Positions 39,185 to 63,808 of a stretch of 64,000 nucleotides of DNA are shown here, in pieces (position 1 is the first letter of the stretch; each line of letters starts with the position of its first letter). The notes under the pieces are model-generated. The model ran no database searches. It saw only the letters and a program-made list of their open reading frames with translations, and had not been told where the DNA came from. The DNA lies in NCBI RefSeq assembly GCF_964204645.1, contig NC_134031.1:19351910-19415909 (forward strand), written 5' to 3'. The stretch is from Tubulanus polymorphus (taxonomy: Eukaryota > Animalia > Nemertea). The position numbers were made by a program, and so were the translations under genes.

Positions 39185-40936
39185 TATTCACTCCACTCTA
39201 TCTCTCTCTTAAAATGATAATCATGATGATGCAAAACATGACTTCGACGAATTATATTTTGTAAAATATGAAATGCTACCAGTGTATTGAGGGATCTTTA
39301 CATGAATACTGTTCGTGTATTAGTGCCATGTTTACTATTATAAAGAGGGATCATTGTTTACATATATAGTATTTGTATAGATATATATTATATTATACTT
39401 GTATTGGACATTATCACTTCAGGTTTTATCAAGGTCAACGATTTTTGTATGTAATTTTTACGCTTTTCTTTAATTCAGGGTAAAAACCGTTTCTGATGAG
39501 TAATTATTTTATCGTTTCCCCAAAATTAGTTGATTTCAATTCCTGTATATTGTTATAACTCTATGTTGCCAAATATATTGGCAAAAATATAATGGGGATT
39601 ATATCCAAGGGGGAGCAGCAGGTTAAGTTAACTGGTGGGTAATTGACTTTGTGACTATCAAAACTGGGTCTAGTGTCGCAAATTAAAGGATTTAACTCCT
39701 TAATTTATTTAAAGATAAACCGAATAAACGCAGAAATTAAACTTTTTCATGTCAACATTTTTCAGACAGTTAAACTGTAACAGTCTTAAACCGATTGAGC
39801 GACTGTCCCCTTAGTATTCAGTCTTCTATCTTCACCATTTTTTCTTGCAATTTCAACTGATTTTAAGGCGTTAACCAAGGTTTACTGCATTTTATTTTTT
39901 CCCCACAACGAATTTATTTCCTATTAATTCATGTTCTAACAGTGATAATGATTTATTTTCGAATTGATTTTTTCGTAACTAGAAATTTAGAATCGAATCT
40001 ATGTACCGTATATCTTTTCAGAAATTTATTTATGAAATAAAATTCTAGATGATTGTTCAAACAAATGATATTTCTCCTTTCATGGTTTGTAGTAGTAAAG
40101 CTTAAGAGGAAAAAGTAGTGACAATTTATTTTTTGTCAGGGCCAGAGAAACCCGAAAAAGGGCAGCTCCATAGGATATAACATTGCTATTTGCAAAACGG
40201 GCACTTTTCCAAAATTTCTGGGGGAATCCCCCTGCTTTTCAGGGAATTGTGCCCAGTAAAATAATTGCACTTTTTGTAAAAATTAAGCACAAATCTTATT
40301 TTCCAAAAAGTTACACGAAGTACACTCACAACGAACCAAGTCCTTGTGCGTTCCTTTCATGGATCAGGCTCATACGGGTGATAGGTCAATGTTGATATAG
40401 ATAGGGGGTAGAGCTTGAAGAGACCAAAATCCAGGACGAATCAACAGAAAAACTTCAAAATCAAGATTTTCCATTCTATTCTACACTTTTACTAATATAT
40501 TATACAGATGTTTATACACATTCATTATAGACGCATATTACATGGAATGATATTTCATTCCGGAGGTCATGATGAACACTATACCCAGCTTTCCGCACAG
40601 ACATGTATGTCTTTATTCGCAAGGCTTATTGAACATATTATCTACTATTTCGTTATTTTGACTAGAACACTGGTCTTTCGTTTAGAATGATATACATTAA
40701 TAACGACGTTTAAGTCAGATCTACAAATGCATTTTCCAACTAATATTTGAAGACCAGCCTTAAAACTCGAAATTTAGCAAATCTGACGCTAAAATGGCCT
40801 ACATTACATATACCGGGTACCTCCTTTACTTTAAACATCTATCTTAATGACTAAGACACATCATACTCAGTTCCGATATGACACACAATTATTAATACAA
40901 TATATTGATGATAAATATGAATTTCATAATTGAAAA

Positions 40937-41836
40937 CTAGATGCGAAGATTAATATGTCTTTTAGCTTCTATATCTGCTACTATTTCTATTAAACGCAAC
41001 ACGGTTTTTTCTTTATTCGAAGCGACGTTTTGATTCATATCCTGCAGTTGTCGAGCCATAGCATCGTCGATTGTTTGTTGCATGTTCCCTTTCGAACCCA
41101 TCGTCTAAAATAGGAAAAAACAAAATGCACGAATATTGAAAAAGCAGTTTTAAGATCATGAGGTCATTTGACTGCAGTTTAGAGAGGTACCGGTATTCTA
41201 AAACCATTGGTCACTCCGAATGGCTCGTAAACCCAAAGTTCACAGGTTCTGATCCTGGTGATAGCAAAGTTTCTTGATCGAAGGATCATAAAACACTTTT
41301 ATGCCAACGATGATTATTTCCCTGCTGCCTTTTTTAGATTTTAAGATTCCCAGATTTTTTTTGGGACGGCGACCAGTCCAAACAGGGACGTATAATATAA
41401 TAAATAACTACCTTTTCCTCTTTGTCTCTAAATTCTTTTTCCCTTTTTTGACGATAAGCCTCTATTTCAGCTTGAGCCTCCTCTTTGGCCTGTTTTAATC
41501 TTCGGGCTTTCCCTTAAAAATTTCAAAGAAAAATTGATTAGGCATCGAGGATTGTAAACATGAAACATTAAAATTGTAACAGGCCTATAGTGTGTGATGT
41601 GACAGTTGTCAAAATGTCATAAGATCTTTCACTTCCGGGTTTAGAAACTCATGATTCAAGCGCTGTTTTTACGCGTACTTTCTCCCCAAACGCGAGAAAA
41701 ACTCACCCCGATCAAACAATACTACTTATATTCTCGTTCGATCGTATAACTTACTTTTCCTTGCCTCGGCAACCTTTTCAGCTGCGCGTTTTTCGGCCGC
41801 AAGTAATTGTTGAATTCCTTGAGATTGGCTCGCCAT
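40937..41836 (-). CDS. ATP6V1G: V-type proton ATPase subunit G (3 exons, 116 aa)
   Basis: Exons 41836-41755 (MASQSQGIQQLLAAEKRAAEKVAEARK), 41512-41412 (RKARRLKQAKEEAQAEIEAYRQKREKEFRDKEEK) and 41104-40937 (TMGSKGNMQQ...KRHINLRI-TAG). Junctions are canonical GT-AG and in frame. The ORF track misses this gene. Confidence 0.97.
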
Positions 41837-41847
41837 TTTGGATGTAA

Positions 41848-41857
41848 GTCATGTGAC
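41848..41857. promoter_or_regulatory. CLEAR/M-box element GTCATGTGAC (MiT/TFE binding site)
   Basis: Lies ~12 nt upstream of the V-ATPase G ATG. MITF/TFEB control of V-ATPase subunit genes through this motif is established. Confidence 0.6.
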
Positions 41858-42060
41858 TGACGACGCAGGCAAATCTAGCTTTATCTGTAAAATTCTTAAC
41901 TTGAAATAATTTTTAATTTTTTATTAAATGAATACATTCTTATAGCAAAGTATATAATAAAAGCAGTAGAATTCATCAAAAATGACAATTGTGATATTCA
42001 GCATATGTTAGCAGGTAGTTTTGCCTGAAGAAGAAACTAGGTCAACGTGATTTCCTATTC

Positions 42061-42070
42061 ATGACGTCAT
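42061..42070. promoter_or_regulatory. Palindromic CRE (ATGACGTCAT)
   Basis: Perfect 10-bp palindrome between the V-ATPase G start and the transposon left end. Confidence 0.4.
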
Positions 42071-42081
42071 TAGGCTGGGTT

Positions 42082-42140
42082 TGCCACAGTACAACTAGCA
42101 TCCCCGTACAACAGGCATCCCATAGCAGACTGCGCATGCG
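42082..42140 (+). repeat. Left terminal inverted repeat (imperfect)
   Basis: Aligns with the reverse complement of 61061-61114. Contains GCATCCC motifs and TGCGCATGCG, which is duplicated at ~42131 and ~42152. Confidence 0.75.
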
Positions 42141-42295
42141 TCAATATGCACTGCGCATGCGTCAATAGCAGACAGCTTTTCGCCGTATAAACGGCATCCT
42201 CTGACAGCATAGCTAGCATTTACCGTAATCAATCGCGCCGTGCTTTTTGTTTCCGATAATATACTTATCGATTTATTTAACTATCATCAATAAAA

Positions 42296-45200
42296 ATGGA
42301 TCCTGCTGAAGCAACGAACCTTTCTAATTACCTGTTGAATGGCCAATATCCAGCCGATTTTACAAAGGCGATGAAGTGTACTCTGAGAAAGAAAGCGAAG
42401 CATTTTACCATGCAAGGTAGGAAATGAAATATTTTCGTTTTTCAAAATAATATTTGAAAATTCATTAAAGTGTTTTAAAATTATTTTTGAGATAGATAAA
42501 TACAGTTAGGAAAAAGATATCTTGACTTAAATTAAATTTAGATAGATATGTGAGTGAAAAATTCCAACAAATCATTTGAAAATCTGAAGCGTTTGTGACC
42601 GAATGTGCGATTTTTGTTACCGAACTAAAATTGTTGGGAAAACTGTTTGGGCCCAAATAAAAATTATTTTTCGGCATTCAGGATCTATCCAACAAGACTA
42701 TTTCTTTAAAGAAAAATTTACTAAGTAATGTGAGAAAATTTGTTCGACCAATCATTTTAATTCTGAAGCGTTTTGGTTTTATTGCTATTATCAAAGCTAA
42801 AATTGTTGGGAAAAAGATTTGTCATGACTCTGGATCGACCAAATAAAGCTGAATGAGTTATTTCTTTTAAAAAAGTTTTCAATAAGTCATTTAGATGAAA
42901 AGAAATGAACAAAATGTTTCAACCAATCATTTGAAAATTTGTGTGTATTTTGTAAAGGATATTGGTTAGAAAAAAAATAGTTTCAACGTTTTTCACAACT
43001 CGATGAAAACGTAGGTCCTGAACTTTGGAGATCGTAAAAATCTTTAGATTTTCATTGTGCATAGCAACGTGCTTGAACAGGTGTTTCTATCAGTATCTTC
43101 TTGTCAGGAGTAAAAATTAATGGTACTACGGCCCTGGAAGTGGCAGTACCCAAGGAAGACTGTAGCAATTTATGATGCGTTGACGTGCGTTGAAACGAGG
43201 CGACGCATCACAACAGTTGTTTAACTGCGGTTTCTATGGATGCCAATTACGCACCAGCAATTATGAGGGGTATTCCCTGATAAATCAAACAGCTTTTTTT
43301 CAGGTATTTGAGGCTAATTTAACTAAGGCCAATCTTAGAGGCGGCATATTTGACGTACTATTCTAATAGAATGATATCAAAACATCATGACAATTAATTA
43401 CTTAAAAATAAGAAAATGATACACGACATCAATCAGATTCTGATTAATGGTAATATCTAGCATGGCACCAGATATGGCAGTATTAGAGCTATTCCCTCAT
43501 AGTTTGATATCAAAACATAGATGAAAATTGAAAACTTCATATTATTCAATATTTAATTATTAGATACAGCTATCATATTTGACCGTAAGGGGTGCATTTT
43601 ATACTAGATGTAGTATTAGAGCTATCTCCAAATAAAATGATTTTAAAACATCGATGACATTATAAGAGCTAATAGATTGATATTTAAGACATCCAGGGCA
43701 ATTAATAACTTCAAAATCCAAAATAAAACATGATATTAATGATATTTTAAATAAAATACATTCTGATTAACCGTTACTTATGACTTAAAAGGAGGGGATG
43801 CATGTTATACCGTACCAGCTGACAGTATTAGAGCTACCCCCTAATAGATTGATATTAAAACAACCAGGGCAATTAATAACTTCATAATCCAAAATAAAAC
43901 ATGATATTTATGATATTTTGAATAAGATACATTGTGATTAACCATTACGTATTACTTTAAAGGGGGATGCATGTTATACCGTACTAGCTGACAGTATTAG
44001 AGCTACCCCCTAATAGATTGATATTAAAACAACCAGGGCAATTAATAACTTCAAAATCTATAATAAAACATGATATTATAGATATTTTGAATAAGATACA
44101 TTCTGATTAACCATTACTTATGACTTAAAAGGAGGGGATGCATGTAATACCGTACCATCTGACAGTATTAGAGCTACCCCCTAACAGATTGATATTAAAA
44201 CAACTATTGCAATTAATAACTTCAAAATCTATAATAAAACATGATATTAATGATATTTTGAATAAGATACATTCTGATTAACCATTACTTATGACTTAAA
44301 AGGAGGGGATGCATGTAATACCGTACCAGCTGGCAGTATTAGAGCTACCCCCTAATAGATTGATATTAAAACAACTATTGCAATTAATAACTTCAAAATC
44401 TATAATAAAACATGATATTATAGATATTTTGAATAAGATACATTCTGATTAACCATTACTTATGACTTAAAAGGAGGGGATGCATGTAATACCGTACCAT
44501 CTGACAGTATTAGAGCTACCCCCTAACAGATTGATATTAAAACAACTATTGCAATTAATAACTTCAAAATCTATAATAAAACATGATATTAATGATATTT
44601 TGAATAAGATACATTCTGATTAACCATTACTTATGACTTAAAAGGAGGGGATGCATGTAATACCGTACCATCTGACAGTATTAGAGCTACCCCCTAACAG
44701 ATTGATATTAAAACAACTATTGCAATTAATAACTTCAAAATCTATAATAAAACATGATATTAATGATATTTTGAATAAGATACATTCTGATTAACCATTA
44801 CTTTAAAGGAGGGGATGCATGTAATACCGTATCAGCTGACCGTATTAGAGCTACCCCCTAACAGATTGATATTAAAACAACTATTGCAATTAATAACTTC
44901 AAAATCTATAATAAAACATGATATTAATGATATTTTGAATAAGATACATTCTGATTAACCATTACTTATGACTTAAAAGGAGGGGATGCATGTAATACCG
45001 TACCATCTGACAGTATTATAGCTACCCCCTAATAGATTGATATTAAAACAACCAGGGCAATTAATAACTTCATAATCCAAAATAAAACATGATATTAATG
45101 ATATTTTGAATAAGATACATTGTGATTAACCATTACGTATTACTTTAAAGGGGGATGCATGTTATACCGTACTAGCTGACAGTATTAGAGCTACCCCCTA

Positions 45201-48200
45201 ATAGATTGATATTAAAACAACCAGGGCAATTAATAACTTCAAAATCTATAATAAAACATGATATTAATGATATTTTGAATAAGATACATTCTGATTAACC
45301 ATTACTTATGACTTAAAAGGGGGATGCATGTTATACCGTACCATCTGACAGTATTAGAGCTACCCCCTAACAGATTGATATTAAAACAACCAGGGCAATT
45401 AATAACTTCATAATCCAAAATAAAACATGATATTACTGATATTTTGAATAAGATACATTGTGATTAACCATCACTTATTACTTTAAAGGGGGATGCATGT
45501 TATACCGTACCAGCTGACAGTATTAGAGCTACCCCCTAATAGATTGATATTAAAACAACCAGGGCAATTAATAACTTCAAAATCTAAAATAAAACATGAT
45601 ATTAATGATATTTTTAATAAGATACATTCTGATTAACCATTACTTATGACTTTAAAGGAGGGGATCCATGTTATACCGTACCAGCTGACAGTGTTAGAGC
45701 TATCCCCTGATAAAATGATATTAAGATACTGGAGGACAATTATTATTTAAATTAAAGTAGACTACTATTATACTGAACTGCGATAGTGAAAAACTTTTAA
45801 TTTATGATTTTGTGGCCTCTAATCACCGTAGATAGAATCATACGACTAGTATGCATAGCAACGTGCTTGAACAGGTGTCTCAGTCAGAATCTTTTTGTCA
45901 GCAGTAAAAATTAATGGCCCCGAACGTGGCAGTACCCATCAATTAGGATAGGCATGATATGTTCACGTACGTTGATACGAGGCGACGCAACACAACAGTT
46001 GTTTAACAGCGGTTTCCATGTACCAGTAATTAGAAGGGTATTACTTGATAAATCAAACAGGTTTTTGGTATCTTAGAAGATATATTCTGATTAACATCGC
46101 ACCAGAGAAAGCATTAATAGAGCTGTTCCGTAATAGAAAGATACTAAACCAAATTAAAAATTCAAAGATAAATCACTTTTGGATAATTCCAAAATAAGAC
46201 ATCATCTTATTCACGTTTTTATGTAGATGTATTCTCATTGACTATTATATTTAACTTAACAGGATGTGCATGTTATACCGTTCTATTTAGCAGTTGAGCT
46301 ATCTATTAGAACATTTAAAAGAATTACTTCCAAATCTTAGATTTAAAACGATTATTTTAGAGTGAATACATTCTGATGAACTATATTCTATCCGACTTTA
46401 AGGGTGATTCATGAAATTTAGCATTTGATGCTAAAAGTTGATAAATTTGATAAATAGGCGCCATTTTATGGCGGTCCCTCGAGGTCCACATTTTTGCGAT
46501 AATTTCAACTCTTTTTTTAAAACATATGTTTAGATTAAATATCATATAGTTCTACAGTCCCTTGCTCGATGAACTCAAACACCATTTTAAAGGAAATGAA
46601 ATGCAGATATCTGCTGGTGATTCTTGGATGTTTTGAACGCAACAGAGAACAGTGACGATGTGAAACCAAGGACCGCATATTTTAACCGCGCGATATCTAT
46701 TAACTTTGAAGTATCTCTAAAAGCTATATTTCCAATTTTCACAGAGGTTAAAAGGGTTGTTTGCCGTTCGGGCCGGCGTTTAAATTGTTTGAATATCTTT
46801 CCTTACGACTGATCTGTATCCGCTTGAGTTTGAGATTACGCGCCACCATTTCACCGAACATAACCAAAATTATGAATAATGATATTGCATCGATAGATTA
46901 AAGATCAAATCTCAATATCTAAGAAAAATATCTCAAGTCCCGATCAATAGTTAGTAAAGCAGCTAATATCGAATAATCATAAATCTGATGATAGATATAT
47001 ATTATATAAATGATTGAACTTGTTATTCTATTTGAACTCATTCTGGTAAAATAAAATCAATAAAAGTTTTGAAAAATAAATCTTGCTTCAATTTACGTTT
47101 TTGGCAGGAACTCAACTATTTAGAATTCGTCGGAATGGCAAGCATGCCCAAGTTGTAAGCTCCTTGGATGAAGTAAAAAGGATTTTTACATCATATCATT
47201 CGAGTCCTGAAGGAGGCCATTTCAAATTAGAAAAGACTTTCTCCGTGATCGCAGAGAAGTACTTTTGGCCTTCAATGACTAATGACTTGCGAGACTGGGT
47301 AAGTTCATATATCAAATAACCCTTTTAGATTCAGTCATATATTGTGGGATTTTTACTCATCGTCTTATCACGGATATTGTGATCAACTGATCCGTATATT
47401 ATTTGTTTGAATATTCTACGTAACAGTACAATTATTAAACATAACATAGAATAATTAGAGCATGTATTATTACCCAATTAAAGGTGCCTTTTTATTTCTT
47501 ATCATCAATAAATCAATAGATCAAGGGATGTGAAAGCTGTAATATCAAAACTGGGAGATTGCTGAAGGGCGATTCTGAGTTGCAACCTATTAAGGTAAAT
47601 GTCTCTTTTCTTCTATAAAATTTACATGTACCCTCACCAACATCAAGTATAAGATTATTTCACATACTTTACTTTACTTTACTTTATTTGACAAACTCTT
47701 GGTCTTAATACAAAGGCAATTTGAGTGATATATACAGTACATAAAAAGATACATCATATGCGACGTACAGTAGGTAGATACCTAATTAAATATAGGTTTA
47801 CATGCGAGCTATTTCTAAGGAAAAGTGAAAAATCTCATAATTTTACCAATAAAAATTCACAATTTACTAAGTTCGGCTTTCTCTTTGGTTTGCATTAATA
47901 ACTTATGTTTCATAAGGTTGATATAAAATCTGCTGTCTAGATATAATTCCCTACTATCATTTGAATATGTACAGTTGAAAAGGTAGTGAAATTCGTCCCC
48001 AATCCTTATATACATATGACATGTGCTTTCGCCGCGCTCAGTATTATCCCATCTACGTTTTTATTGTGAGCTTATGATTTGTATTTCGAAATTTAGTTAA
48101 GTTAATTATGAGGTTATTATTACGATAGACCATATTGTTAATTGTTTTTTATTTCTAGGTTAATGAAGTCTGGGAAATGGTAGGCGTTGATCTAACCGAA

Positions 48201-51200
48201 GCACCGATGACAAAAAATGGAAACCGGTATATATTTACGGCTACTGATTACGTGTCAAAATGGGTAGAAGCATACCCGATAAAACAAAAGTCGGCAACTG
48301 AAGTTGCAAAGTGTATCCTACAGATGTACTATCGATTTGGTGCCCCAAAGAGAATCCTGTCTGATCAAGGAAGGGAATTTAATAATCAAGTAGGTTTGAC
48401 TCTTGATAAATCACAGAGAACTTGTTATCATTGAAAATCATGTCATATTGTCTTCTTTTAAGTGCAGAATTCAGAGGAAGGTATGTAGGTACTGTCAAAC
48501 TTTTTAACATTAAGGTTGTGTTTTAATCATAGTAACGTTGGTGTTGTATTTCTCAGCTTTGGTTTTTGTTAACCCACAATTGGTTTTGTCATTCTCTTAC
48601 GGGATCTTAAAGCTTCGATCACCTTATGTTTTATGTATTTTTGTGAAAATGTTCATATTTTATTCATTATTAATAAATTAGCTAAAATTCAAGTAAGCAT
48701 CTTTAACTACAACTATAGTTATAACTATAAATATAACTATGATTATATAATTAACTATACAGCTTTAATCATATAACAATATAACAATATAAGTATAACT
48801 AGTACTATACAACTATAAGTGAAATGATCCTGATTCATTTTAGTTGAATGATGAGTTATTGAAAATGATGGGTACGAAACATTGTGTCACCGCTGCCTAC
48901 CACCCACAAACCAATGGACTCGATGAACGGACAAATCAAACTCTAAAACAGTACGTGAAAATACGGAAATATAACATCAGACAGATCTATTTTCATGTAT
49001 TATGTCATTCTTACATTATTGTATTTTAGGAGATTAAAGCATTTAGTTAATTCTAAAAAAAATGATTGGGACGATTACTTAAACAGTGCCACTTACTCCA
49101 TTAATACGAAGCCACACAGCAGCACGAAAATGTCTCCGTTTTATGTTATGTATGGAAGAGTTGCCAGGAATGGAATTGAGGTACCAGAGGTTACTGAAGA
49201 ATACTCGGTAAAATCAATTTTTTCAGTTCGAATTTTTGTATAAAGATGCTGAATTTTGTTAAAATATGTCTCATTTTCCTATATTTACCTTATATATCCA
49301 GGGAGTTGAAGAAAACGGAAATACTGAAGCCAATATTTTATCCATTCATGAGAAAATTGAACAGACCGCGAGGCAAAATATTGAAAAGGCCCAAACTCGT
49401 CAAAAAATTAATTACGATAGGCGGCAAAATAAAGGAGCGAAGAGCCTCAAAGTTGGAGACAAGGTCTACAGGTATTAGTTCCATACCATGCCTATAGTTT
49501 TATGTATGTATTATTACGTGTTGCATTGAATATATGGTATATATATTAGGTACAAAGCAGAAAATATTGGGAGGAAAGGTGGTTTCTTGGAATCTAACTT
49601 CCACGAGGAGACGTTGACTATTGAAGAGATTGTTGGCAAATCAGCGATATTATTGAAAGATGGTAGACCTCTGGGCAGAAAAGTGTCTTTGAAACACTTG
49701 ATGCCCACCAGAGATTTAATCACTGAGTATATTCCAAGAAACCTTCTAAAGAAGAGTTGAGTATCTTAATGAATTAAAGACATCATACTCGTGAAGACAT
49801 GTACTGATAATGAAAAGTAATTAAAATCTTTTGTTTTAGAAGGTTTGAAGGCAAATGCTGACACGGAAGTCGACAGTAACATCTCTGGTATGTACAGAAT
49901 AAACCAATAGTTCATAATGAATCAATTTTGGAAGTTTGTAAATAATAATTATGTTGAATGTCTTCGTCAATTATATTCTGTTCTAGATGGTTTAATTGAT
50001 GACACTGAAGTCCAGGCTGGTGACGACATCGTGGACAACAACGCTGGTGTGTACAGAATAAAACAAAAGTTTAAGAATGAATTAATTAATTCTAAAGTTT
50101 GTAAATAATGATTATGTTGAATGTCATCGTCAATTAATTCTGTTCTAGATGGTTTAATTGATGACACTGAAGTCCAGGCTGGTGCCGATATCGTGGACAA
50201 CAACGCTGGTGTGTACAGAATAAAACAAAAGTTTAAGAATGAATTAATTAATTCTAAAGTTTGTAAATAATGATTATGTTGAATGTCATCGTCAATTAAT
50301 TCTGTTCTAGATGGTTTAATTGATGACACTGAAGTCCAGGCTGGTGACGACATCGTGGACAACAACGCTGGTGTGTACAGAATAAAACAAAAGTTTAAGA
50401 ATGAATTAATTAATTCTAAAGTTTGTAAATAATGATTATGTAGAATGTCATCGTCAATTAATTCTGTTCTAGATGGTTTAATTGATGACACTGAAGTCCA
50501 GGCTGGTGCCGATATCGTGGACAACAACGCTAGTGTGTACAGAATAAAACAAAAGTTTAAGAATGAATTAATTAATTCTAAAGTTTGTAAATAATGATTA
50601 TGTTGAATGTCATCGTCAATTAATTCTGTTCTAGATGGTTTAATTGATGACACTGAAGTCCAGGCTGGTGCCGATATCGTGGACAACAACGCTGGTGTGT
50701 ACAGAATAAAACAAAAGTTTAAGAATGAATTAATTAATTCTAAAGTTTGTAAATAATGATTATGTTGAATGTCATCGTCAATTAATTCTGTTCTAGATGG
50801 TTTAATTGATGACACTGAAGTCCAGGCTGGTGACGACATCGTGGACAACAACGCTGGTGTGTACAGAATAAAACAAAAGTTTAAGAATGAATTAATTAAT
50901 TCTAAAGTTTGTAAATAATGATTATGTTGAATGTCATCGTCAATTATATTCTGTTCTAGATGGTTTAATTGATGACACTGAAGTCCAGGCTGGTGACGAC
51001 ATCGTGGACAACAACGCTGGTGTGTACAGAATAAAACAAAAGTTTAAGAATGAATTAATTAATTCTAAAGTTTGTAAATAATGATTATGTTGAATGTCAT
51101 CGTCAATTAATTCTGTTCTAGATGGTTTAATTGATGACACTGAAGTCCAGGCTGGTGCCGATATCGTGGACAACAACGCTGGTGTGTACAGAATAAAACA

Positions 51201-54200
51201 AAAGTTTAAGAATGAATTAATTAATTCTAAAGTTTGTAAATAATGATTATGTTGAATGTCATCGTCAATTAATTCTGTTCTAGATGGTTTAATTGATGAC
51301 ACTGAAGTCCAGGCTGGTGACGACATCGTGGACAACAACGCTGGTGTGTACAGAATAAAACAGAAGTTTAAGAATGAATGAATTAATTTGGGAAGTTTGT
51401 AAATAATAATTATGTTGAATGTCATCGTCAATTAATTCTGTTCTAGATGGTTTAATTGATGACACTGAAGTCCAGGCTGGTGACGACATCGTGGACAACA
51501 ACGCTGGTGTGTACATAGAATATCGTTGGTATAATAGACAAAATTCTAAACATTTTTCCCATCTTTTAATAAATTCCCTGTCTATTTACAGAAATAATAA
51601 ATATAAGTGATACGGAAGAGATAGAAATGTCTGTACCGATCGCAAAAGAAGCAGCAGTACCTTCAGATGATACTCGTAAGAAAACAGTTTCTCACATTGT
51701 GCCCACAGTCAATGGCGATGATAATTATCATGAATGTATGATTTCTGTCTTTCAGTGGTTTATACGACCTGGGAATATGGTCCGAAGGACTACTACTTTG
51801 GAAAATTGTTTACCGTAAGAGGAGTACCGTTGTCGGATGCGACAATATTTTCATTAAAAAAAAATGAACAGCTCAATGATGAAGTAAGTATAAAGCTCTT
51901 ACAATTTTTTGATTTTTTCTGGGTTGATTAAACGTATTCCTTTTTCAGGCTGTTTTTCAAGGGCTCAATCATTTAACGTTAAAGTATTCGACGGAATCGA
52001 AAGTAAGTATGGAAAGTTTGAAGTGTACATTCGTATGTACCAATTAAACAAATTACCGCGGTACTGCTTATTGAAAATTTCTTGAATTCATTGAAATAAA
52101 CATTATGGTTTTAGACGATTGGAGTACAGAGTAGCCATATTTTGTCGCCAATGATATTTGGTGATAGACGCCGATTGCCGGGTGCATTGGTAAGTTTGTG
52201 TAACCATGAAATAGAATAAGCTGGAATTCTTAGGAAGTAACGTTAGAAGTATTATCCAAGGATTTATCTAATGTCATTTCATGTGACAGTTTTTAAAAAG
52301 ATATTCTTATATTTCAGAGATCATTGGCAGAAAAAGAAGTATGGCTATGCCCATTGTTACATGGTGGTCACTGGACACTCATGGTACTTAATCAAATCAC
52401 ATAGAACTGAACATAGAACTTATAATTGCTTTAAAATTCATTATATCTGCAGATCATACAGACAAATACGAAAGAGATCTTGTATCTCAATTCATTGGGC
52501 GAACTAAAAGAGGAATTGATAACCGTTTTTAAAAACACAATCGCCATCAAGAGTGTCAAGTCAATGGGAAACTGGAGGTTGAGGACCGTCAAACACTCAA
52601 AGCAGCTAGATTCATCATCATGTGGAGTCTTTGTTCTCAAGGTATATGAAAGGACTTTATATACAGGGATATTATTGATATTAACAAGTTTAATTATGGT
52701 ATACCCTGTATCTAAATAACTTGCAGGAGACCGTGTTTGTTAATCAAATAGGCCTCACACTATAATTGATTATATTCTGCGATATTCTGTAGTTTGCAGA
52801 GAGTATTTTGGCAAATGAAACCCTTGAGTTTGACAATACTAGTTCTGCGATCGATCAGTACCGATTTGAGATAGCCATGTGGCTCATGGGATCGATAGGT
52901 AAGAAAGGTGAACAGTACGCAATAAAGATATACACATTCCTTTACCTGAAATTGAAATTACAGTGTATTTTCATTCAATAGCTACAGATCCTTCAAAGAT
53001 GTGCTGTCTATGTTGTCATGCAAGCTCAATTCATGTTACCGATTGGGTAAGTTTCCGTTGACACTAATTGATATTATACAATTTTTCTTCTATTCGTGGT
53101 GAATGTTTAGAAATGTTCCCAGTTTATTTGATTTATCATTTTCAATCAGATTGGCTGTGATAGATGCTTTAGGTGGTTTCACCTAGCTTGCTACAACAGA
53201 CAAATACCCCTGATAGGCAGCAACATTGCAAGCAGTGTGATGTTTTTTTGCAAGTACTGCAAAGCTATTGACAGTAAGCAAAGATCAGTCTCGCGAATAT
53301 CTTTTCTATCTATTATATTAATTCTTTAATGAATATATTTGCATTCATTTTTATTCAGGCGAACAAGAAAATCAAGGAAATCCTATAGGAAATGGTGAGT
53401 TATAATGAATTGCTGTTGCATAACAATGTATCAAACTTTGAGGAAGACTGGGAAGACTCCAATCGGTTGGCTGGCATGATTCATTTGGTCGACCTGGTTT
53501 ACCCAGAATGATTCCATTTATAACATTATATTATTATAGGAGTTATTAAAGTCTTAGGATAATTTGATGAAAAATCTTACGAAAGAAAATCAATGATAAT
53601 TTTTTCACAGTGTACTTAGTTAAGACTAAGGAGAAATAATTAAGTTGGTTCTAGCTCCGAGGTATCTACTCACTACACATGTCGCGCGCACAATCCTAAT
53701 TTTAAAGTAAGAGTAAAAGACCAACGGAGAATGAAGATAAATTGAATAGAAACTTTTCTTCAGGTAACTTTCCTGATGTGTCCCTCGTCCAAAATGAAAA
53801 TGAGCTTCATGATGCAGAGTTCGTTACTAGTAAGTTCAATATGTCAGGATACCGGGAATGTCCATAATTTATTGCAAGATGGATTACAGATGGAGACAAA
53901 CATTCGCCAAGGAATCATTATGATAGGCCTACTGTAGTAGAAAGTTAGTACTATGAAATAGAGTCGTCCTAAAGTACCCTGTTTTTCTATATTACAGATA
54001 ATGAATTACCAGACATAGTTCCACCAAAACGAAGAAAAACGAGTGATTTTGAGTTCGAGAATACCACTGCATGTGACAACAAAACTGCAGGTCTGTTAAT
54101 TCTGCATTTCTTAATTCTATTCAATCAGATTACTAATTTGATGTAGCGCATTTGTGACCACGAACATAATTATGTTCGTATATAACGAATTAAGTAGGAG

Positions 54201-54791
54201 AGGTATGGTCTTGTATATACATATATGTGTACAATTTGTAGGTACGAAAATGCGAAAAGCTGTAAAAAAGAAGAAAAAAGAAACAGGTATACTTTTCACA
54301 GATTTGAATTTAGTTATTACATCTGTATCGGTTATTTTTGACAATTACATTGACTTTTCTAGGCGGAAAGATGGAGTTACCGAAAAAGGAAAGAACTAGT
54401 AAACAAGAAAAAGATATAGGTAATTTGAAAATAACGACATGAAAGCTGTAACACGTCTCATTTTAGCGCTTTAACATATCAATAATGTATTATTTTTCAG
54501 CGCCATTTTACATGAAGAGAAAGATCGACGAGAATAAAGCGATGCCAAGGCTGCCCTACGGATCTTAAATCGAGACTGGTTGTGGCTTCATATGGAAATT
54601 ATCAATTCTTTGATAAAAAATCTGCCAGCAAGAGGGATTCCTGGAGAGTTGGTTATTTCCACCCTAACGCCACTTGTATTTTGAGAAAATACCCTGAATT
54701 TGATGGAAATATCTTTATGCCATCAGATGTTGTTATATCTGATGAAGAATGTATTGAAATTTTGCAAAAGGGCTTAAAACCAACGTACTAA
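42296..54791 (+). CDS. Ginger/GIN-like transposase: H2C2 + DD35E integrase, acidic repeat linker, Ulp1 (C48) protease, PHD finger, C-terminal Zn-finger-like module; ~34 exons, ~1060-1130 aa
   Basis: Exon 1 42296-42416 (YLLNGQYP...LRKKAKHF). Exons 47108-47298 and 47520-47594 give H..GGH..YFWP..CESC. Exon 48159-48389 has VGVDL and SDQGREF. Exon 48844-48950 has YHPQTNGLDER (35 residues between D and E). Exons 49030-49755 have SPFYVMYGR and AQTRQKINYD..LKVGDKV. Ten 60-nt repeat exons follow. Ulp1 spans 51756-52898 (QLNDE, GGHWTL, YLNSLG, QLDSSSCGVFVL). PHD spans 52982-53273 (CCLC..WIGCDRCFRWFHLAC..FFCKYC). NLS-like PPKRRK and KKKKK follow. All junctions keep frame until the last exon, which has a frame ambiguity near 54520. 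Confidence 0.85.
42480..42970. repeat. Decayed tandem repeat of ~175-180 bp, about 3 copies, in intron 1
   Basis: AATCATTT(G)AA..(T/C)TGAAGCG recurs at ~42570 and ~42751, with a weaker copy at ~42925. CTAAAATTGTTGGGAAAA recurs at ~42625 and ~42797. Confidence 0.5.
43059..43292 (+). repeat. Diverged ~230-bp direct repeat, copy 1 (left of the intronic satellite)
   Basis: GCATAGCAACGTGCTTGAACAGGTGT...GTGGCAGTACCCA...CGAGGCGACGCA.CACAACAGTTGTTTAAC...TGATAAATCAAACAG recurs at 45853-46060. Confidence 0.85.
43600..45730 (+). repeat. 171-bp satellite array, ~12 copies, in transposase intron 1
   Basis: Period measured from TTCTGATTAA at 44101 and 44272. Twelve GGGGAT(G/C)C landmarks lie between ~43795 and ~45665. 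Edges are degenerate. Confidence 0.95.
45853..46060 (+). repeat. Diverged direct repeat, copy 2 (right of the intronic satellite)
   Basis: Homologous to 43059-43292 and followed by highly decayed satellite-like monomers (~46080-46320). Confidence 0.85.
47666..48056 (-). mobile_element. 5'-truncated non-LTR retrotransposon 3' end nested in transposase intron 3
   Basis: The minus strand translates RWDNTERGESTCHMYIRIGDEFHYLFNCTYSNDSRELYL, a decayed C-terminal Cys/His knuckle of LINE ORF2, with an in-frame stop downstream. It ends in AATAAA plus an (AAAGT)n tail. Confidence 0.7.
49840..51515 (+). repeat. 162-bp tandem repeat = 60-nt exon + 102-nt intron, 10 copies plus a diverged 48-nt precursor exon
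   Basis: Each unit is ttctag|ATGGTTTAATTGATGACACTGAAGTCCAGGCTGGTG(AC/CC)GA(C/T)ATCGTGGACAACAACGCTG|gtgtgt. Exon starts: 49987, 50149, 50311, 50473, 50635, 50797, 50960, 51122, 51284, 51447. Encodes DGLIDDTEVQAG(D/A)DIVDNNA. Confidence 0.92.
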
Positions 54792-54949
54792 TGCTTCGTC
54801 ATTTTACAAAATGTATCTTCGTAAGAATCCAAAGATTATCATAGTTGATTTTTTTATTTTGCAGTTATGAATTCTAATAATTAGTTGTGATATCATTTTG
54901 AGCTATACTATCGTCAGGTCAGGTAGTTTGACAGTAAAAAATGTCCTTT

Positions 54950-57900
54950 ATGTTTTGATATCATTTTATCTGTCATTCTATAATGCGATACCTCTAAAAC
55001 TGTCAGCTGGTACAGTATAACATCCCTTTAAAGTCATGAGTAATGGTTAATCAGAATGTATTTTATTCAAAATATCATGTTTTATTTTGGATTTTGAAGT
55101 TATTAATTGCCCTGGTTGTTTTAATATCAATCTATTAGGGGGTAGCTCTAATACTGTCAGATGGTACGGTATTACATGCATCCCCTCCTTTTAAGTCATA
55201 AGTAATGGTTAATCAGAATGTATCTTATTCAAAATATCAGTAATATCATGTTTTATTATAGATTTTGAAGTTATTAATTGCAATAGTTGTTTTAATATCA
55301 ATCTGTTAGGGGGTAGCTCTAATACTGTCAGATGGTACGGTATTACATGCATCCCCTCCTTTAAAGAAATGGTTAATCAGAATGTATCTTATTCAAAATA
55401 TCATTAATATCATGTTTTATTATAGATTTTGAAGTTATTAATTGCAATAGTTGTTTTAATATCAATCTGTTAGGGGGTAGCTCTAATACTGTCAGATGGT
55501 ACGGTATTACATGCATCCCCTCCTTTTAAGTAATGGTTAATCAGAATGTATCTTATTCAAAATATCATTAATATCATGTTTTATTATAGATTTTGAAGTA
55601 ATTAATTGCAATAGTTGTTTTAATATCAATCTGTTAGGGGGTAGCTCTAATACTGTCAGATGGTACGGTATTACATGCATCCCCTCCTTTTAAGTCATAA
55701 GTAATGGTTAATCAGAATGTATCTTATTCAAAATATCATTAATATCATGTTTTATTATAGATTTTGAAGTTATTAATTGCAATAGTTGTTTTAATATCAA
55801 TCTGTTAGGGGGTAGCTCTAATACTGTCAGATGGTACGGTATTACATGCATCCCCTCCTTTTAAGTCATAAGTAATGGTTAATCACAATGTATCTTATTC
55901 AAAATATCATTAATATCATGTTTTATTTTGGATTATGAAGTTATTAATTGCCCTGGTTGTTTCAATATCAATCTATTAGGGGGTAGCTATAATACTGTCA
56001 GATGGTACGGTATTACATGCATCCCCTCCTTTTAAGTCATAAGTAATGGTTAATCAGAATGTATCTTATTCAAAATATCATTAATATCATGTTTTATTAT
56101 AGATTTTGAAGTTATTAATTGCAATAGTTGTTTTAATATCAATCTGTTAGGGGGTAGCTCTAATACGGTCAGCTGATACGGTATTACATGCATCCCCTCC
56201 TTTAAAGTAATGGTTAATCAGAATGTATCTTATTCAAAATATCATTAATATCATGTTTTATTATAGATTTTGAAGTTATTAATTGCAATAGTTGTTTTAA
56301 TATCAATCTGTTAGGGGGTAGCTCTAATACTGTCAGATGGTACGGTATTACATGCATCCCCTCCTTTTAAGTCATAAGTAATGGTTAATCAGAATGTATC
56401 TTATTCAAAATATCATTAATATCATGTTTTATTATAGATTTTGAAGTTATTAATTGCAATAGTTGTTTTAATATCAATCTGTTAGGGGGTAGCTCTAATA
56501 CTGTCAGATGGTACGGTATTACATGCATCCCCTCCTTTTAAGTCATAAGTAATGGTTAATCAGAATGTATCTTATTCAAAATATCATTAATATCATGTTT
56601 TATTATAGATTTTGAAGTTATTAATTGCAATAGTTGTTTTAATATCAATCTGTTAGGGGGTAGCTCTAATACTGTCAGATGGTACGGTATTACATGCATC
56701 CCCTCCTTTTAAGTCATAAGTAATGGTTAATCAGAATGTATCTTATTCAAAATATCATTAATATCATGTTTTATTATAGATTTTGAAGTTATTAATTGCC
56801 CTGGTTGTTTTAATATCAATCTATTAGGGGGTAGCTATAATACTGTCAGATGGTACGGTATTACATGCATCCCCTCCTTTTAAGTCATAAGTAATGGTTA
56901 ATCAGAATGTATCTTATTCAAAATATCATTAATATCATGTTTTATTATAGATTTTGAAGTTATTAATTGCAATAGTTGTTTTAATATCAATCTGTTAGGG
57001 GGTAGCTCTAATACGGTCAGCTGATACGGTATTACATGCATCCCCTCCTTTAAAGTAATGGTTAATCAGAATGTATCTTATTCAAAATATCATTAATATC
57101 ATGTTTTATTATAGATTTTGAAGTTATTAATTGCAATAGTTGTTTTGATATCAATCTGTTAGGGGGTAGCTCTAATACTGTCAGATGGTACGGTATTACA
57201 TGCATCCCCTCCTTTTAAGTCATAAGTAATGGTTAATCAGAATGTATCTTATTCAAAATATCATTAATATCATGTTTTATTATAGATTTTGAAGTTATTA
57301 ATTGCAATAGTTGTTTTAATATCAATCTGTTAGGGGGTAGCTCTAATACTGTCAGATGGTACGGTATTACATGCATCCCCTCCTTTTAAGTCATAAGTAA
57401 TGGTTAATCAGAATGTATCTTATTCAAAATATCATTAATATCATGTTTTATTATAGATTTTGAAGTTATTAATTGCAATAGTTGTTTTAATATCAATCTG
57501 TTAGGGGGTAGCTATAATACTGTCAGCTGGTACGGTATTACATGCATCCCCTCCTTTTAAGTCATAAGTAATGGTTAATCAGAATGTATCTTATTCAAAA
57601 TATCATTAATATCATGTTTTATTATAGATTTTGAAGTTATTAATTGCAATAGTTGTTTTAATATCAATCTGTTAGGGGGTAGCTCTAATACTGTCAGATG
57701 GTACGGTATTACATGCATCCCCTCCTTTTAAGTCATAAGTAATGGTTAATCAGAATGTATCTTATTCAAAATATCATTAATATCATGTTTTATTATAGAT
57801 TTTGAAGTTAATAATTGCAATAGTTGTTTTAATATCAATCTGTTAGGGGGTAGCTCTAATACTGTCAGATGGTACGGTATTACATGCATCCCCTCCTTTT

Positions 57901-60675
57901 AAGTCATAAGTAATGGTTAATCAGAATGTATCTTATTCAAAATATCAGTAATATCATGTTTTATTATAGATTTTGAAGTTATTAATTGCAATAGTTGTTT
58001 TAATATCAATCTGTTAGGGGGTAGCTCTAATACTGTCAGATGGTACGGTATTACATGCATCCCCTCCTTTTAAGTAATGGTTAATCAGAATGTATCTTAT
58101 TCAAAATATCATTAATATCATGTTTTATTATAGATTTTGAAGTAATTAATTGCAATAGTTGTTTTAATATCAATCTGTTAGGGGGTAGCTCTAATACTGT
58201 CAGATGGTACGGTATTACATGCATCCCCTCCTTTTAAGTCATAAGTAATGGTTAATCAGAATGTATCTTATTCAAAATATCATTAATATCATGTTTTATT
58301 ATAGATTTTGAAGTTATTAATTGCAATAGTTGTTTTAATATCAATCTGTTAGGGGGTAGCTCTAATACTGTCAGATGGTACGGTATTACATGCATCCCCT
58401 CCTTTTAAGTCATAAGTAATGGTTAATCAGAATGTATCTTATTCAAAATATCATTAATATCATGTTTTATTATAGATTTTGAAGTTATTAATTGCAATAG
58501 TTGTTTTAATATCAATCTGTTAGGGGGTAGCTCTAATACTGTCAGATGGTACGGTATTACATGCATCCCCTCCTTTTAAGTCATAAGTAATGGTTAATCA
58601 CAATGTATCTTATTCAAAATATCATTAATATCATGTTTTATTTTGGATTATGAAGTTATTAATTGCCCTGGTTGTTTTAATATCAATCTATTAGGGGGTA
58701 GCTATAATACTGTCAGATGGTACGGTATTACATGCATCCCCTCCTTTTAAGTCATAAGTAATGGTTAATCAGAATGTATCTTATTCAAAATATCATTAAT
58801 ATCACGTTTTATTATAGATTTTGAAGTTATTAATTGCAATAGTTGTTTTAATATCAATCTGTTAGGGGGTAGCTCTAATACTGTCAGCTGGTACGGTATT
58901 ACATGCATCCCCTCCTTTAAAGTAATGGTTAATCAGAATGTATCTTATTCAAAATATCATTAATATCATGTTTTATTATAGATTTTGAAGTTATTAATTG
59001 CAATAGTTGTTTTAATATCAATCTGTTAGGGGGTAGCTCTAATACTGTCAGATGGTACGGTATTACATGCATCCCCTCCTTTTAAGTCATAAGTAATGGT
59101 TAATCAGAATGTATCTTATTCAAAATATCAGTAATATCATGTTTTATTATAGATTTTGAAGTTATTAATTGCAATAGTTGTTTTAATATCAATCTGTTAG
59201 GGGGTAGCTCTAATACTGTCAGATGGTACGGTATTACATGCATCCCCTCCTTTTAAGTAATGGTTAATCAGAATGTATCTTATTCAAAATATCATTAATA
59301 TCATGTTTTATTATAGATTTTGAAGTTATTAATTGCAATAGTTGTTTTAATATCAATCTGTTAGGGGGTAGCTCTAATACTGTCAGATGGTACGGTATTA
59401 CATGCATCCCCTCCTTTTAAGTCATAAGTAATGGTTAATCAGAATGTATCTTATTCAAAATATCATTAATATCATGTTTTATTATAGATTTTGAAGTTAT
59501 TAATTGCAATAGTTGTTTTAATATCAATCTGTTAGGGGGTAGCTCTAATACTGTCAGATGGTACGGTATTACATGCATCCCCTCCTTTTAAGTCATAAGT
59601 AATGGTTAATCAGAATGTATCTTATTCAAAATATCATTAATATCATGTTTTATTATAGATTTTGAAGTTATTAATTGCAATAGTTGTTTTAATATCAATC
59701 TGTTAGGGGGTAGCTCTAATACTGTCAGATGGTACGGTATTACATGCATCCCCTCCTTTTAAGTAATGGTTAATCAGAATGTATCTTATTCAAAATATCA
59801 TTAATATCATGTTTTATTATAGATTTTGAAGTTATTAATTGCAATAGTTGTTTTAATATCAATCTGTTAGGGGGTAGCTCTAATACTGTCAGATGGTACG
59901 GTATTACATGCATCCCCTCCTTTTAAGTCATAAGTAATGGTTAATCAGAATGTATCTTATTCAAAATATCATTAATATCATGTTTTATTATAGATTTTGA
60001 AGTTATTAATTGCAATAGTTGTTTTAATATCAATCTGTTAGGGGGTAGCTCTAATACTGTCAGATGGTACGGTATTACATGCATCCCCTCCTTTTAAGTC
60101 ATAAGTAATGGTTAATCAGAATGTATCTTATTCAAAATATCATTAATATCATGTTTTATTATAGATTTTGAAGTTATTAATTGCAATAGTTGTTTTAATA
60201 TCAATCTGTTAGGGGGTAGCTCTAATACTGTCAGATGGTACGGTATTACATGCATCCCCTCCTTTTAAGTCATAAGTAATGGTTAATCAGAATGTATCTT
60301 ATTCAAAATATCATTAATATCATGTTTTATTATAGATTTTGAAGTTATTAATTGCAATATAGTTGTTTTAATATCAATCTATTAGGGGGTAGCTCAAATA
60401 CTGTCAGCTGGTACGGTATTACATGCATCCCCTCCTTTTAAGTCATAAGTAATGGTTAATCAGAATGTATCTTATTCAAAATATCATTAATATCATGTTT
60501 TATTATAGATTTTGAAGTTATTAATTGCAATAGTTGTTTTAATATCAATCTGTTAGGGGGTAGCTCTAATACTGTCAGATGGTACGGTATTACATGCATC
60601 CCCTCCTTTTAAGTCATAAGTAATGGTTAATCAGAATGTATCTTATTCAAAATATCATTAATATCATGTTTTATA
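54950..60675 (-). repeat. 171-bp satellite array, ~33 copies, reverse orientation relative to 43600-45730
   Basis: The monomer is the reverse complement of the intronic satellite. It is a mix of 171-bp and 164-bp (7-nt deletion) units and is highly homogeneous. Confidence 0.96.
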
Positions 60676-60984
60676 GATACTAGTAGATACTATCATTTAT
60701 GTTATCATGTTTATATGCGTTATTCTTATGTTTTACTGGAAATGTAAATATCGTTAAATATTGAAAATAAAATATATTTTAGTATTTGAAAAAACGGAAT
60801 TGTCTGATTACTTTTTAAATTTACGGTTTTGATGCTTATAAAATGCAACTGCCGAAGCATTCATTACTGAATGCATTGTTACGTAGTATTTTTTTCATTG
60901 CGAGTGATTTTATTCAAAAACAAACAATAAATAATTGGTAATTGTTTGATGAATCAAAGCATCAATAAATTGAATTGAATTGGT

Positions 60985-61114
60985 ACAAAAGAAGGGGATG
61001 CCTCTAGTACGGGGATGGCTTTTACTCGTTTGCGGTAAACAAGCAGTGGAATCCCACGCGCATGCGCAATCAGGGGGTGCCTGTAATGAGTGGGATACCA
61101 CTTGTACTGTGACA
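60985..61114 (-). repeat. Right terminal/subterminal inverted repeat
   Basis: Ends CTTGTACTGTGACA|CCGG. The subterminal GGGGATGCCTCTAGTACGGGGATGG mirrors the left GCATCCCCGTACAACAGGCATCCC. Confidence 0.78.
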
Positions 61115-62139
61115 CCGGAAACAACCGATTTTTTTTCATCAAGACAAAGTCTGAATCTAGGTACGTGGATCTTTTAATAATTACTGACTGATTTATCAAT
61201 GACATGCATGAATTATGATATGTTTGTGTTCAACTAAATGATTGCTTCTTGTAAACCGATAATTTGTAAATATTCATTGATGACAACCCTACTTTTTTAG
61301 GAGGCAAAAAATTTAGGGCCAAACCAACAAAGCCAAAAAAGCCAAAGGCAAAAATCATGAACAATTTGTCAGCACTTTGTGCATAAAGCATTCCACTCTC
61401 CATGGCGTATGGTCAGAGTCGATTTAGAGGGCTACTTAATTAGCAGCAGCGGGTCCAGAAATAACAATAAAATTATTTATAAGGTTGCTAGGGTTAGAGG
61501 GTTTTGATATGGAAAGGGTCCAGAGACAGTGGGTTAGGATTAGACCCAGGTCCGAATACTGCGCTATTTTCTCTTACTTTCCTTGAATTTTTTGCATACC
61601 TACCTCATTGTGCATTAGCCAATCAGAACGAGATATTGCCAAAATAGAAGAATAATGCTTTGGCAAAATATCACCTGTCTACTTATTTACCGTTGGTTGG
61701 TGGTGCTTTTATAATGGTCTTATAGGCCTATGCCAATAGTGGTTTATGAAAATATCTAAATGGGACCTTGAACCCCAGATAGGTTACTGATTACTCTTAG
61801 ATTTCATGATGTCAGATTTTATGATGTCAATGATCAGGATCTGTTCCAAGGGTAATCTCAAGTGCGTAGAAATTTGATTTTGTAATATTCTCTCGAGTTT
61901 CCTGGGCTGAAGGTATCTGTTCTAAGTCTGAAGAGTTGTTTCAGTAATAGTTTATGGTACCGACGATACCCGGTGTAGTTGAACACGTGGTTTAGATAGC
62001 TAGAAGATGGAGTACATACCTGAGCATAGACATTCACAGGTGCGCTGTATAGAGTATGTATACTCTCTTAGTGAGGAGAGAGAGAGAGAGGGAGACGGAG
62101 TCAGCATTCCACTCATTCAACCTGTCTACTATACCACTG

Positions 62140-62695: not shown

Positions 62696-63227
62696 ATGGC
62701 ATCCGAAAACAACGTCGTTGATACAAATACCGTCGACTTTCGTTTGATGCGAAAGTTTCTAATCGTCGGCGTCGAAGGCGGCACTTATTTCCCGGGTGAA
62801 AAAGCGTTCGTTCGCGAGCACGCGGCTTGTTTCGATCGGTTGATCGCTGACCGACGCGGCGAGGAGGTCGTCGCAGAAATCGTACGTTGCGCTCGCGAGG
62901 ACTCGGTCGTCGATCGTAAATCGTTGATATTCGCGTTGGCGTCGTGCGCTCGCAACGGCGTCGACCCGAAGACGAAATCTGCCGCGTATAAAGCGCTGCC
63001 GTTAATTTGTACGGACGCGAAGCAACTGTTCAGTTTTATCGATTATTGCGAAACGTTGAGCGGACCGACGAGCGGCTGGGGACGCGGACATCGTAACGCT
63101 ATCGGTAACTGGTATCATTCGTTCGCCGCTGAGGATTTAGCTCGAATCGTCACGAGGAATATCCAGTCAGGAGGATGGTCGCACGTCGACGTGCTGCGTT
63201 TGGCTCATGTTCATCCAAAAAATGATG
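62696..63227 (+). CDS. RO60: Ro60 / TROVE-domain RNA-binding protein, first coding exon (gene continues beyond the window)
   Basis: RLMRKFLIVGVEGGTYF, RLIADRRGEEVV.EI, LIFALA.C, TKSAAYKAL, GWGRGHRNAIGNWY and GWSHVDVLRLAHVHP match the Ro60 N-terminal TROVE region. Donor G|gtaag after 63227. May be a divergent paralog. Confidence 0.88.
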
Positions 63228-63808
63228 GTAAGAGCAATGTATATATAGTGGAACCTCGTTACAACGATATTTAGGGGACCAGAAAATCCATATACCGGTA
63301 TATATCCAGTGTGAAATTATTGAAATTGCTCCATTTTGGAGAAAATTTGAGGTTTTAAGTAACCAGTAAATGGTTATTGGCCTACACTAAGTTGTTATAA
63401 TGAGGTACCATTGGAGTTTGTAGCGAGTCTGACAAAATATGAAAAGTGCTTACCTTTAGAAAACTAGGATTGGCTCTGATTAGTACTTGATTGTCAGGTA
63501 AAATCCTGTAAGGGCTGAAAAGTACTTACTTTTTGAACTCAATGTTATCACAGGAAATTTCTATCGACAAATTCTAATGCAGTCTGTCGTCTTTATGTAC
63601 AAATTCAACTGGGCTAATTATTGTTTTAGAAAAAATTTCGGTTACTTGTCTTTGGCTTCAGGAAATGTGCAGACTTCTGACTTTAAAACCCATGGATACG
63701 TAACGTTGAACACCAAGACATAAATAATATGTTATGATGGGTACTATGGGAGCTTAGAGAAATTTGCAGTCAGCGTCTTTAAGATAGAAGTCACTTGTTT
63801 ATGTGAAA

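Follow-up and report, generated by a model that had tools for sequence, protein, structure and literature searches.

A probable giant Ginger1 transposon of Tubulanus polymorphus, with a private 171-bp satellite in two mirror-image arrays

The Ginger1 DNA transposons, as originally defined, form families of 2.6-7 kb with 0-4 introns (Bao, Kapitonov and Jurka 2010, PMC2836005). They are bounded by inverted repeats of 40-270 bp with TGTNR termini, and flanked by 4-bp CCGG or CCGT target duplications, reported as CCGG (75%) or CCGT/ACGG; their protein combines a Gypsy-like integrase, with YPYY, H2C2, DDE and GPY/F motifs, with a C-terminal OTU or Ulp1 domain and sometimes a PHD finger (PMC2836005). 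Tandem repeats within transposon arms have been described in other superfamilies. One copy of Galileo has tandem repeats of about 140 bp at a distance of roughly 1.7 kb from either end, and expansion of the repeats lengthens the arms (PMC4168063); in Tetris of Drosophila virilis, about 220-bp arm repeats vary in number between copies and have seeded a satellite (PMC4079207). Here we report on an element located at positions 42082-61114 of a 64,000-bp stretch of the nemertean Tubulanus polymorphus genome (contig NC_134031.1, positions 19,351,910 to 19,415,909), which as a whole is called the window. The element is probably an unusually large Ginger1 DNA transposon, recently mobile, which carries a private 171-bp satellite as two mirror-image arrays flanking its transposase gene.

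A search of the genome (268 Mb, 77 contigs) identified two further full copies, C1 and C2, on other chromosomes; all together, three full copies of 18.7-19.0 kb share the same layout on three chromosomes. Window 42085-61119 and C1 form one continuous alignment of 19,035 bp, arrays included, with 99.97% identity, and C2 is 18.7 kb long. The boundaries of both read CCGG|TGTCACAGTAC...GTACTGTGACA|CCGG, with TGTCA, which fits the TGTNR of Ginger1, at either terminus. TGTCA is also found at the right terminus of the window copy, and CCGG adjoins the right side of this copy, of the fragment C5a and of C3, a solo 120-bp right end (C3:14538529-14538648; 99% identity) with unrelated sequence on its inner side. 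Since C1 and C2 lie on other chromosomes within CCGG duplications, they reflect transposition of the whole unit and not segmental duplication: judged by its copies, the element transposes entire, both arrays included.

An earlier note on the window, made from the sequence alone, had reported terminal inverted repeats. These are present, but they are perfect over 13 bp only, followed by an imperfect match to about 55-60 bp and by scattered motifs beyond, and the left one is damaged in this insertion. The left junction of the window copy (42078-42084) reads ggtt-TGC versus CCGG-TGT in intact copies, and the homology with C1 and C2 begins at 42085. After the window copy had inserted, its left terminus and left duplication were altered or lost, and one of its ends is therefore damaged. 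The terminal features are:

42082-42141, plus strand: left terminal inverted repeat, about 60 bp, imperfect; opens TGC here instead of TGT, with no left CCGG
61055-61114, minus strand: right terminal inverted repeat, ending ...GTACTGTGACA
61115-61118, no strand: CCGG target-site duplication, right copy only in the window insertion

The family has few copies in the genome. Besides those already mentioned, C11 is an older incomplete copy, with an identity of about 96% in BLAST alignments, or about 97.5% if only substitutions are taken into account; C5b and C7c are fragments, 93-96% and 80-92% identical, respectively. The fragments C5a and C7b begin at window 46434 and 52488. At C7:14139386-14149888 an old 3' fragment of the family (80-92%) is found twice, about 9 kb apart, the second being followed by the right-edge monomer and one more monomer.

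Reads were examined over window 40500-46400 only. Contigs from the source sample extend across the two junctions of the left array, by 53 nt at the outer and by 51 nt at the inner one, and the same junctions are covered by reads of an independent individual, X5 (Illumina). In X5 the element has about three times the depth of its flank, and reads over the left terminus show other flanks ending in CCGG|TGT. The X5 flank consensus beside this terminus (66% agreement) had no reference match at up to 2 mismatches, and the insertion site was not placed. Three X5 reads join 42451 and 43751 on opposite strands, and may come from a rearranged copy in that animal.

About half of the 19 kb of the element is tandem repeat. 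As the earlier note had seen, the same satellite lies forward in intron 1 and reversed after the stop codon; Tandem Repeats Finder places the two arrays at 43669-45724 and, in opposite orientation, at 55025-60674 (171 bp x 33.4 copies). A hidden Markov model (HMM) of the monomer, which takes in degenerate copies, extends them to 43349-46381 and 54970-60677. The first reversed monomer is found about 180 bp past the stop codon, and the positions of the arrays leave the reading frame uninterrupted. The array features are:

43349-43668, plus strand: degenerate 171-bp monomers, outer flank of the left array
43669-45724, plus strand: left 171-bp array, forward, 12 copies (12.1, Tandem Repeats Finder), with an inner-edge variant monomer at 45639-45728
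45725-46381, plus strand: inner flank of the left array; contains two decayed monomers (46094-46381) and another copy of the direct repeat seen at 43058-43298
54970-60677, minus strand: right 171-bp array, reversed, 33-35 copies (monomer HMM), with an inner-edge variant monomer at 54970-55044

Ungapped inverted arms reach 1,192 nt with 98% complementarity. The whole left array pairs with the right one at about 93-95% over 2.06 kb (measured on C1), leaving a loop of about 9.3 kb; the pairing potential of at least 2 kb, claimed in the earlier note, is thus confirmed. No inverted similarity was found between 42142-43348 and 60678-61055. A 240-bp direct repeat with 75% identity (43058-43298 and 45852-46066) brackets the left array, which suggests that a unit larger than the monomer was duplicated early on.

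The space between the arrays contains the exons that encode the integrase (H2C2/DD35E), as well as those for a Ulp1 protease and for a PHD finger. Domain and homology searches were performed on exons taken one by one. Exon 1 aligns to residues 10-39 of GIN1-like proteins that lack a reverse transcriptase (tblastn, E = 0.002), and the residues that follow are matched from about 47108. The splice signals are AAG|GTAGGA for the donor and ...TTTTTGGCAG|G for the acceptor, and a phase of 121 nt + 2 nt across the intron restores the frame of the homologues. On the basis of homology breakpoints, GT/AG sites and phase, intron 1 is therefore placed at 42417-47107, where it encloses the forward array. 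The catalytic core contains the two Asp and the Glu, with 35 residues from the second Asp to the Glu in the alignment to protein P0033. At the N-terminus, where Ginger1 proteins have a YPYY motif, exon 1 carries QYPADF, a candidate counterpart judged from the exon 1 alignment (E = 0.002). Alignments to GIN1-like proteins reach residue ~291, and none extends further, the GPY/F region lying beyond the catalytic core. The gene features are:

42296-42416, plus strand: exon 1, start codon and N-terminal motif region with QYPADF (tblastn to GIN1-like proteins)
42417-47107, plus strand: intron 1, 4.7 kb, containing the forward array and a nested foreign repeat (GT...AG, phase, homology)
46455-46843, no strand: nested unrelated repeat in intron 1, with many genomic copies
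47108-47316, plus strand: exon, integrase H2C2 zinc-binding domain, first half (Pfam Integrase_H2C2 at 47080-47316; tblastn)
48159-48431, plus strand: exon, integrase catalytic core, first two Asp (Pfam rve, same positions; tblastn)
48844-49213, plus strand: two exons, 48844-48960 (catalytic Glu, DD35E by alignment) and 49028-49213 (Pfam rve_3 at 48844-49026; tblastn)
49263-49757: candidate exons
49878-51515, plus strand: 162-bp array, about 10 units (Tandem Repeats Finder)
52435-52716, plus strand: exon with Ulp1 domain (Pfam Peptidase_C48, same positions, just above the gathering score)
53132-53326, plus strand: exon with PHD finger (Pfam PHD, same positions)
54516-54791, plus strand: last open segment, with stop codon TAA at 54789-54791

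A tblastn search with pieces of retrotransposon polyproteins gave no match to reverse transcriptase, RNase H or protease in the element. Together with the Pfam domains and the DD35E spacing, this agrees with the Gypsy-like integrase without reverse transcriptase recognised in the earlier note. The comparison between C11 and the window copy was uninformative as to purifying selection, exons being 97.9% and the rest 97.5% identical, with frame-breaking gaps in C11; an excess of third-position changes is seen only in the integrase exons.

Membership of the element in Ginger1, proposed from the start, is well supported by its sequence. It shares with the published families the CCGG duplication, the TGTNR termini, here TGTCA, an integrase with H2C2 and DDE and no reverse transcriptase, the Ulp1 and PHD domains, as in Ginger1-9_HM, and the presence of introns (PMC2836005). 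The 4-bp GC-rich target excludes both Ginger2, which has an AT-rich target, and GingerRoot, which has a 6-bp duplication and lacks H2C2. The integrase core is closest to the GIN1-like proteins of amphioxus and fish (55-63% identity), whereas polyproteins bearing a reverse transcriptase reach 35-40%, and this ranking favours GIN1-like proteins over Gypsy. The GIN1-like genes ('Gypsy retrotransposon integrase-like protein 1') have an N-terminus collinear with exons 1 and 2; the element, for its part, has termini, duplications and near-identical copies on three chromosomes. The locus of the amphioxus relative, single and poorly annotated, contains one 108-bp repeat and no paired inverted arrays. 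No other close Ginger1 lineage was found in the T. polymorphus genome: the next-best integrases are at most 43% identical, so that the element represents its only close Ginger1 lineage.

Compared with the described Ginger1 families, the element is, as the earlier note had stressed, a giant (about 19 kb versus 2.6-7 kb); it has many more than 0-4 introns, and contains three internal tandem arrays, two of them inverted. The word 'tandem' is absent from the text of the founding paper (PMC2836005), and no paper linking Ginger1 to such arrays was found in the searched literature. The layout had been proposed to be undescribed; this stands for Ginger in the searchable literature, but not for transposons at large, since mirror-image arm repeats are known in Foldback, Galileo and Tetris. 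As in Galileo and Foldback, each arm contains direct tandem repeats, set back from the ends and in mirror orientation to those of the other arm, and their number varies. In those elements the whole arm is an inverted repeat, whereas here inverted arms do not run the whole length: only the termini of about 60 bp and the arrays are inverted, and the intervening sequence is unrelated. Galileo, a Drosophila member of the P superfamily, has a transposase of another superfamily and a 7-8 bp duplication, and in the T. polymorphus element the left arm holds exon 1. Tetris is also a DNA transposon linked to a young satellite, but it is non-autonomous, makes 8-10 bp duplications and is accompanied by free arrays of kb size; here a transposase is encoded, and free arrays were not found. 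Transposon arms with mirror-image blocks of repeats are thus already known in kind, and Ginger1 is a new setting for them. The element differs from Galileo and Tetris in its superfamily, in the asymmetry of the arms, in being a coding element with one array in an intron and the other past the stop codon, and in the size of the arrays and the total length.

The distribution of the satellite was analyzed by using a three-monomer query. All 12 candidate places in the genome (12/12) are copies or fragments of this Ginger1 family, and no free-standing array of the 171-bp monomer was found among them. C11 has 8 monomers in its left array and a right remnant of 5 monomers in opposite orientation; C7c retains the right inner-edge monomer and one monomer, and C5b the left inner edge. 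Every copy that keeps the relevant region therefore has an array there. Among the observations that the earlier note had named as contrary to its reading were other copies lacking the arrays, together with a satellite common at unrelated loci; neither was made, as C1 and C2 carry both arrays in the same arrangement and the monomer is confined to the family. Its proposal that the element disperses the satellite also agrees with the data: three full copies share the layout, two of them with perfect duplications, and the satellite occurs in this family only.

The sequence of the monomers allows part of the history of the arrays to be read. Decayed monomers flank the left array (43363-43650 and 46111-46294), as expected from growth in place. 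On the gene side, both arrays break off at one and the same column of the monomer, and each has a variant monomer at this inner edge. The edge monomer on the left shares 85% identity with the one on the right, their alignment containing a gap of 8 bp, and each of them is 97-100% identical to its counterpart in C11 or C5b; 18 of the 33 right-array monomers are identical to some left-array monomer. Edges that are 85% alike, but core monomers of which many are identical, point to an inverted duplication of old date, after which the arrays went on exchanging sequence. We read this as a duplication that probably preceded the divergence of all present copies, with the possible exception of C7c. In C11 the one near-complete right monomer, a single monomer, differs by 1.25% from the left array of C11 versus 3.7-4.3% from the window monomers. 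Array sizes change after insertion: near-complete monomers, left and right, are 19 and 23 in C2 versus 11 and 33 in the window copy, and the extra left monomers of C2 are repeats of a three- to four-monomer block.

The probable course of events is the following. The satellite would have arisen in place, from non-coding sequence of the element, and would have been duplicated once, long ago, in inverted orientation, inner array edge included. Exchange within the element, by gene conversion or unequal exchange, would then have kept the two arrays alike, each of them growing and shrinking independently. Most likely, the arrays are tolerated cargo, which gives the element Foldback- or Galileo-like arms but is not required for transposition.

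Several points weigh against this picture of a mobile Ginger1 with tolerated arrays. The arrays outlast by far the divergence of the copies, which could mean that selection maintains them and is not predicted for cargo. The left end of the window copy itself is damaged, and the read check of the junctions covers the left array only. The coding evidence comes from exons searched singly and applies to these, not to an unbroken reading frame overall. A run that is possibly RNA yielded no reads on 40500-46400, and activity of the element is therefore deduced from its copies only. A last point is provided by an 8-mer, GCATCCCC, which in the 64-kb window occurs only in the two subterminal regions, at 42098 (plus strand) and 60994 (minus strand), and once in nearly every monomer.

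If selection is at work, the arrays could be a self-regulating device, acting either through a hairpin of more than 2 kb or through transposase binding, which would keep copy number low while the lineage stays mobile. Such a device would account for a layout that outlives the divergence of the present copies (except possibly C7c); we consider it unlikely. For the hairpin, transcription would start at the left end and pass through the reversed array as far as the first poly(A) signals, at 60766-60964. The earlier note had proposed internal binding platforms, chromatin nucleators or an autoregulatory device; direct support for these roles came neither from the comparison of monomer and termini nor from the possible RNA run. 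Each of the two routes can be weighed by itself.

By the first route, each monomer would carry a transposase-binding site comparable to the subterminal repeats of the ends, the arrays being cis elements that serve as landing pads or decoys and tune transposition. Subterminal repeats are thought to tune transposition in other DNA transposons. The orientation of GCATCCCC is consistent with such a role, each array agreeing with the terminus at the opposite end of the element; over 16 nt, the monomer agrees with the right terminus at 14/16 positions, and the two-array layout is much older than the copies. Against this, GCATCCCC was selected after the data were seen, even the best local alignment of monomer and termini is marginal (p about 0.015 for the right and 0.16 for the left, versus real genomic 171-mers), the motif region is not clearly better conserved than the remaining monomer in old copies, and array sizes vary freely. 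A role in binding therefore seems unlikely. Derivation of the monomer from the termini was also considered, and is retained as a lead only, its scores being marginal versus both shuffles and real genomic segments.

By the second route, a transcript with the forward array in intron 1 and the reversed one in the 3' untranslated region would fold into more than 2 kb of double-stranded RNA, leading to RNA interference or editing and hence to self-limitation. The arms are 93-98% complementary, and the family has few copies. Between the stop codon and the far end of the right array, the sense strand is free of AATAAA and ATTAAA; the last 350 bp of the element then contain three AATAAA. A transcript holding both arrays is thus allowed:

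60766-60969, plus strand: first three AATAAA hexamers after the stop codon

As the stretch repeats a single 171-bp monomer, chance alone would leave it without such hexamers in about half of all cases. Co-transcriptional removal of intron 1 may also prevent both arms from ever sharing one RNA, and the lack of reads in the run guessed to be RNA counts against a hairpin as well. Rfam revealed no known RNA families or ribozymes in the arrays. We regard a built-in hairpin as improbable, and the arrays as most likely tolerated cargo.

An origin of the satellite outside the element, with a satellite-bearing element inserting twice independently or a satellite of the genome being captured, would be in line with the other unrelated repeats inserted in the introns. 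It is very improbable, given that the monomer is found only within the family, that decayed monomers flank the arrays as growth in place predicts, that both inner edges share phase and variant type, and that all copies keeping the relevant regions carry arrays. The damaged left terminus of the window copy and the many exons of the gene might suggest that the inversion was introduced by the assembly, or that the locus is not a transposon but a domesticated host gene whose ends have decayed. Both readings are refuted for practical purposes: the layout recurs in three separately assembled copies and in older, diverged ones, source-sample contigs reach more than 50 nt across both left-array junctions and X5 reads cover them, and a single-copy domesticated gene is excluded by the CCGG duplications on other chromosomes and the near-identity of the copies.

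Read as a mobile element with cargo arrays, the locus shows that mobility in Ginger1 extends to units of 19 kb, half of it satellite, which is about 2.7-fold the length of the largest family in the founding description. It provides a clean, low-copy case in which a transposon is the only means of spread of a satellite, and in which satellite birth, inverted duplication, concerted evolution between arrays and copy-number change can be read from a handful of dated copies. The arm architecture of the Foldback and Galileo type is thereby extended to integrase-related transposons. If the arrays did act in binding or silencing, they would be a natural model for self-limiting transposons.

The 162-bp array, a third one that the earlier note had not mentioned, sits inside the gene body. 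Each of its units consists of a 60-nt phase-preserving mini-exon, bounded by AG and GT and encoding a 20-residue acidic unit, and of a 102-nt intron. About 10 units are present in the window copy versus about 3 in the older C11; amplification of an exon-intron unit therefore seems to have enlarged the coding spacer between integrase and protease.

The transposase introns harbour two unrelated nested repeats (46455-46843 and 47665-48117), each with dozens of genomic copies. The first is often found as inverted pairs about 1.3 kb apart, resembling the ends of another transposon, and the truncated copy C5a begins right beside it, at 46434. Outside the element, 1.6 kb to its right, an open reading frame of 192 residues (62696-63274) shows, as judged by eye and unscanned, some likeness to TROVE/Ro60.

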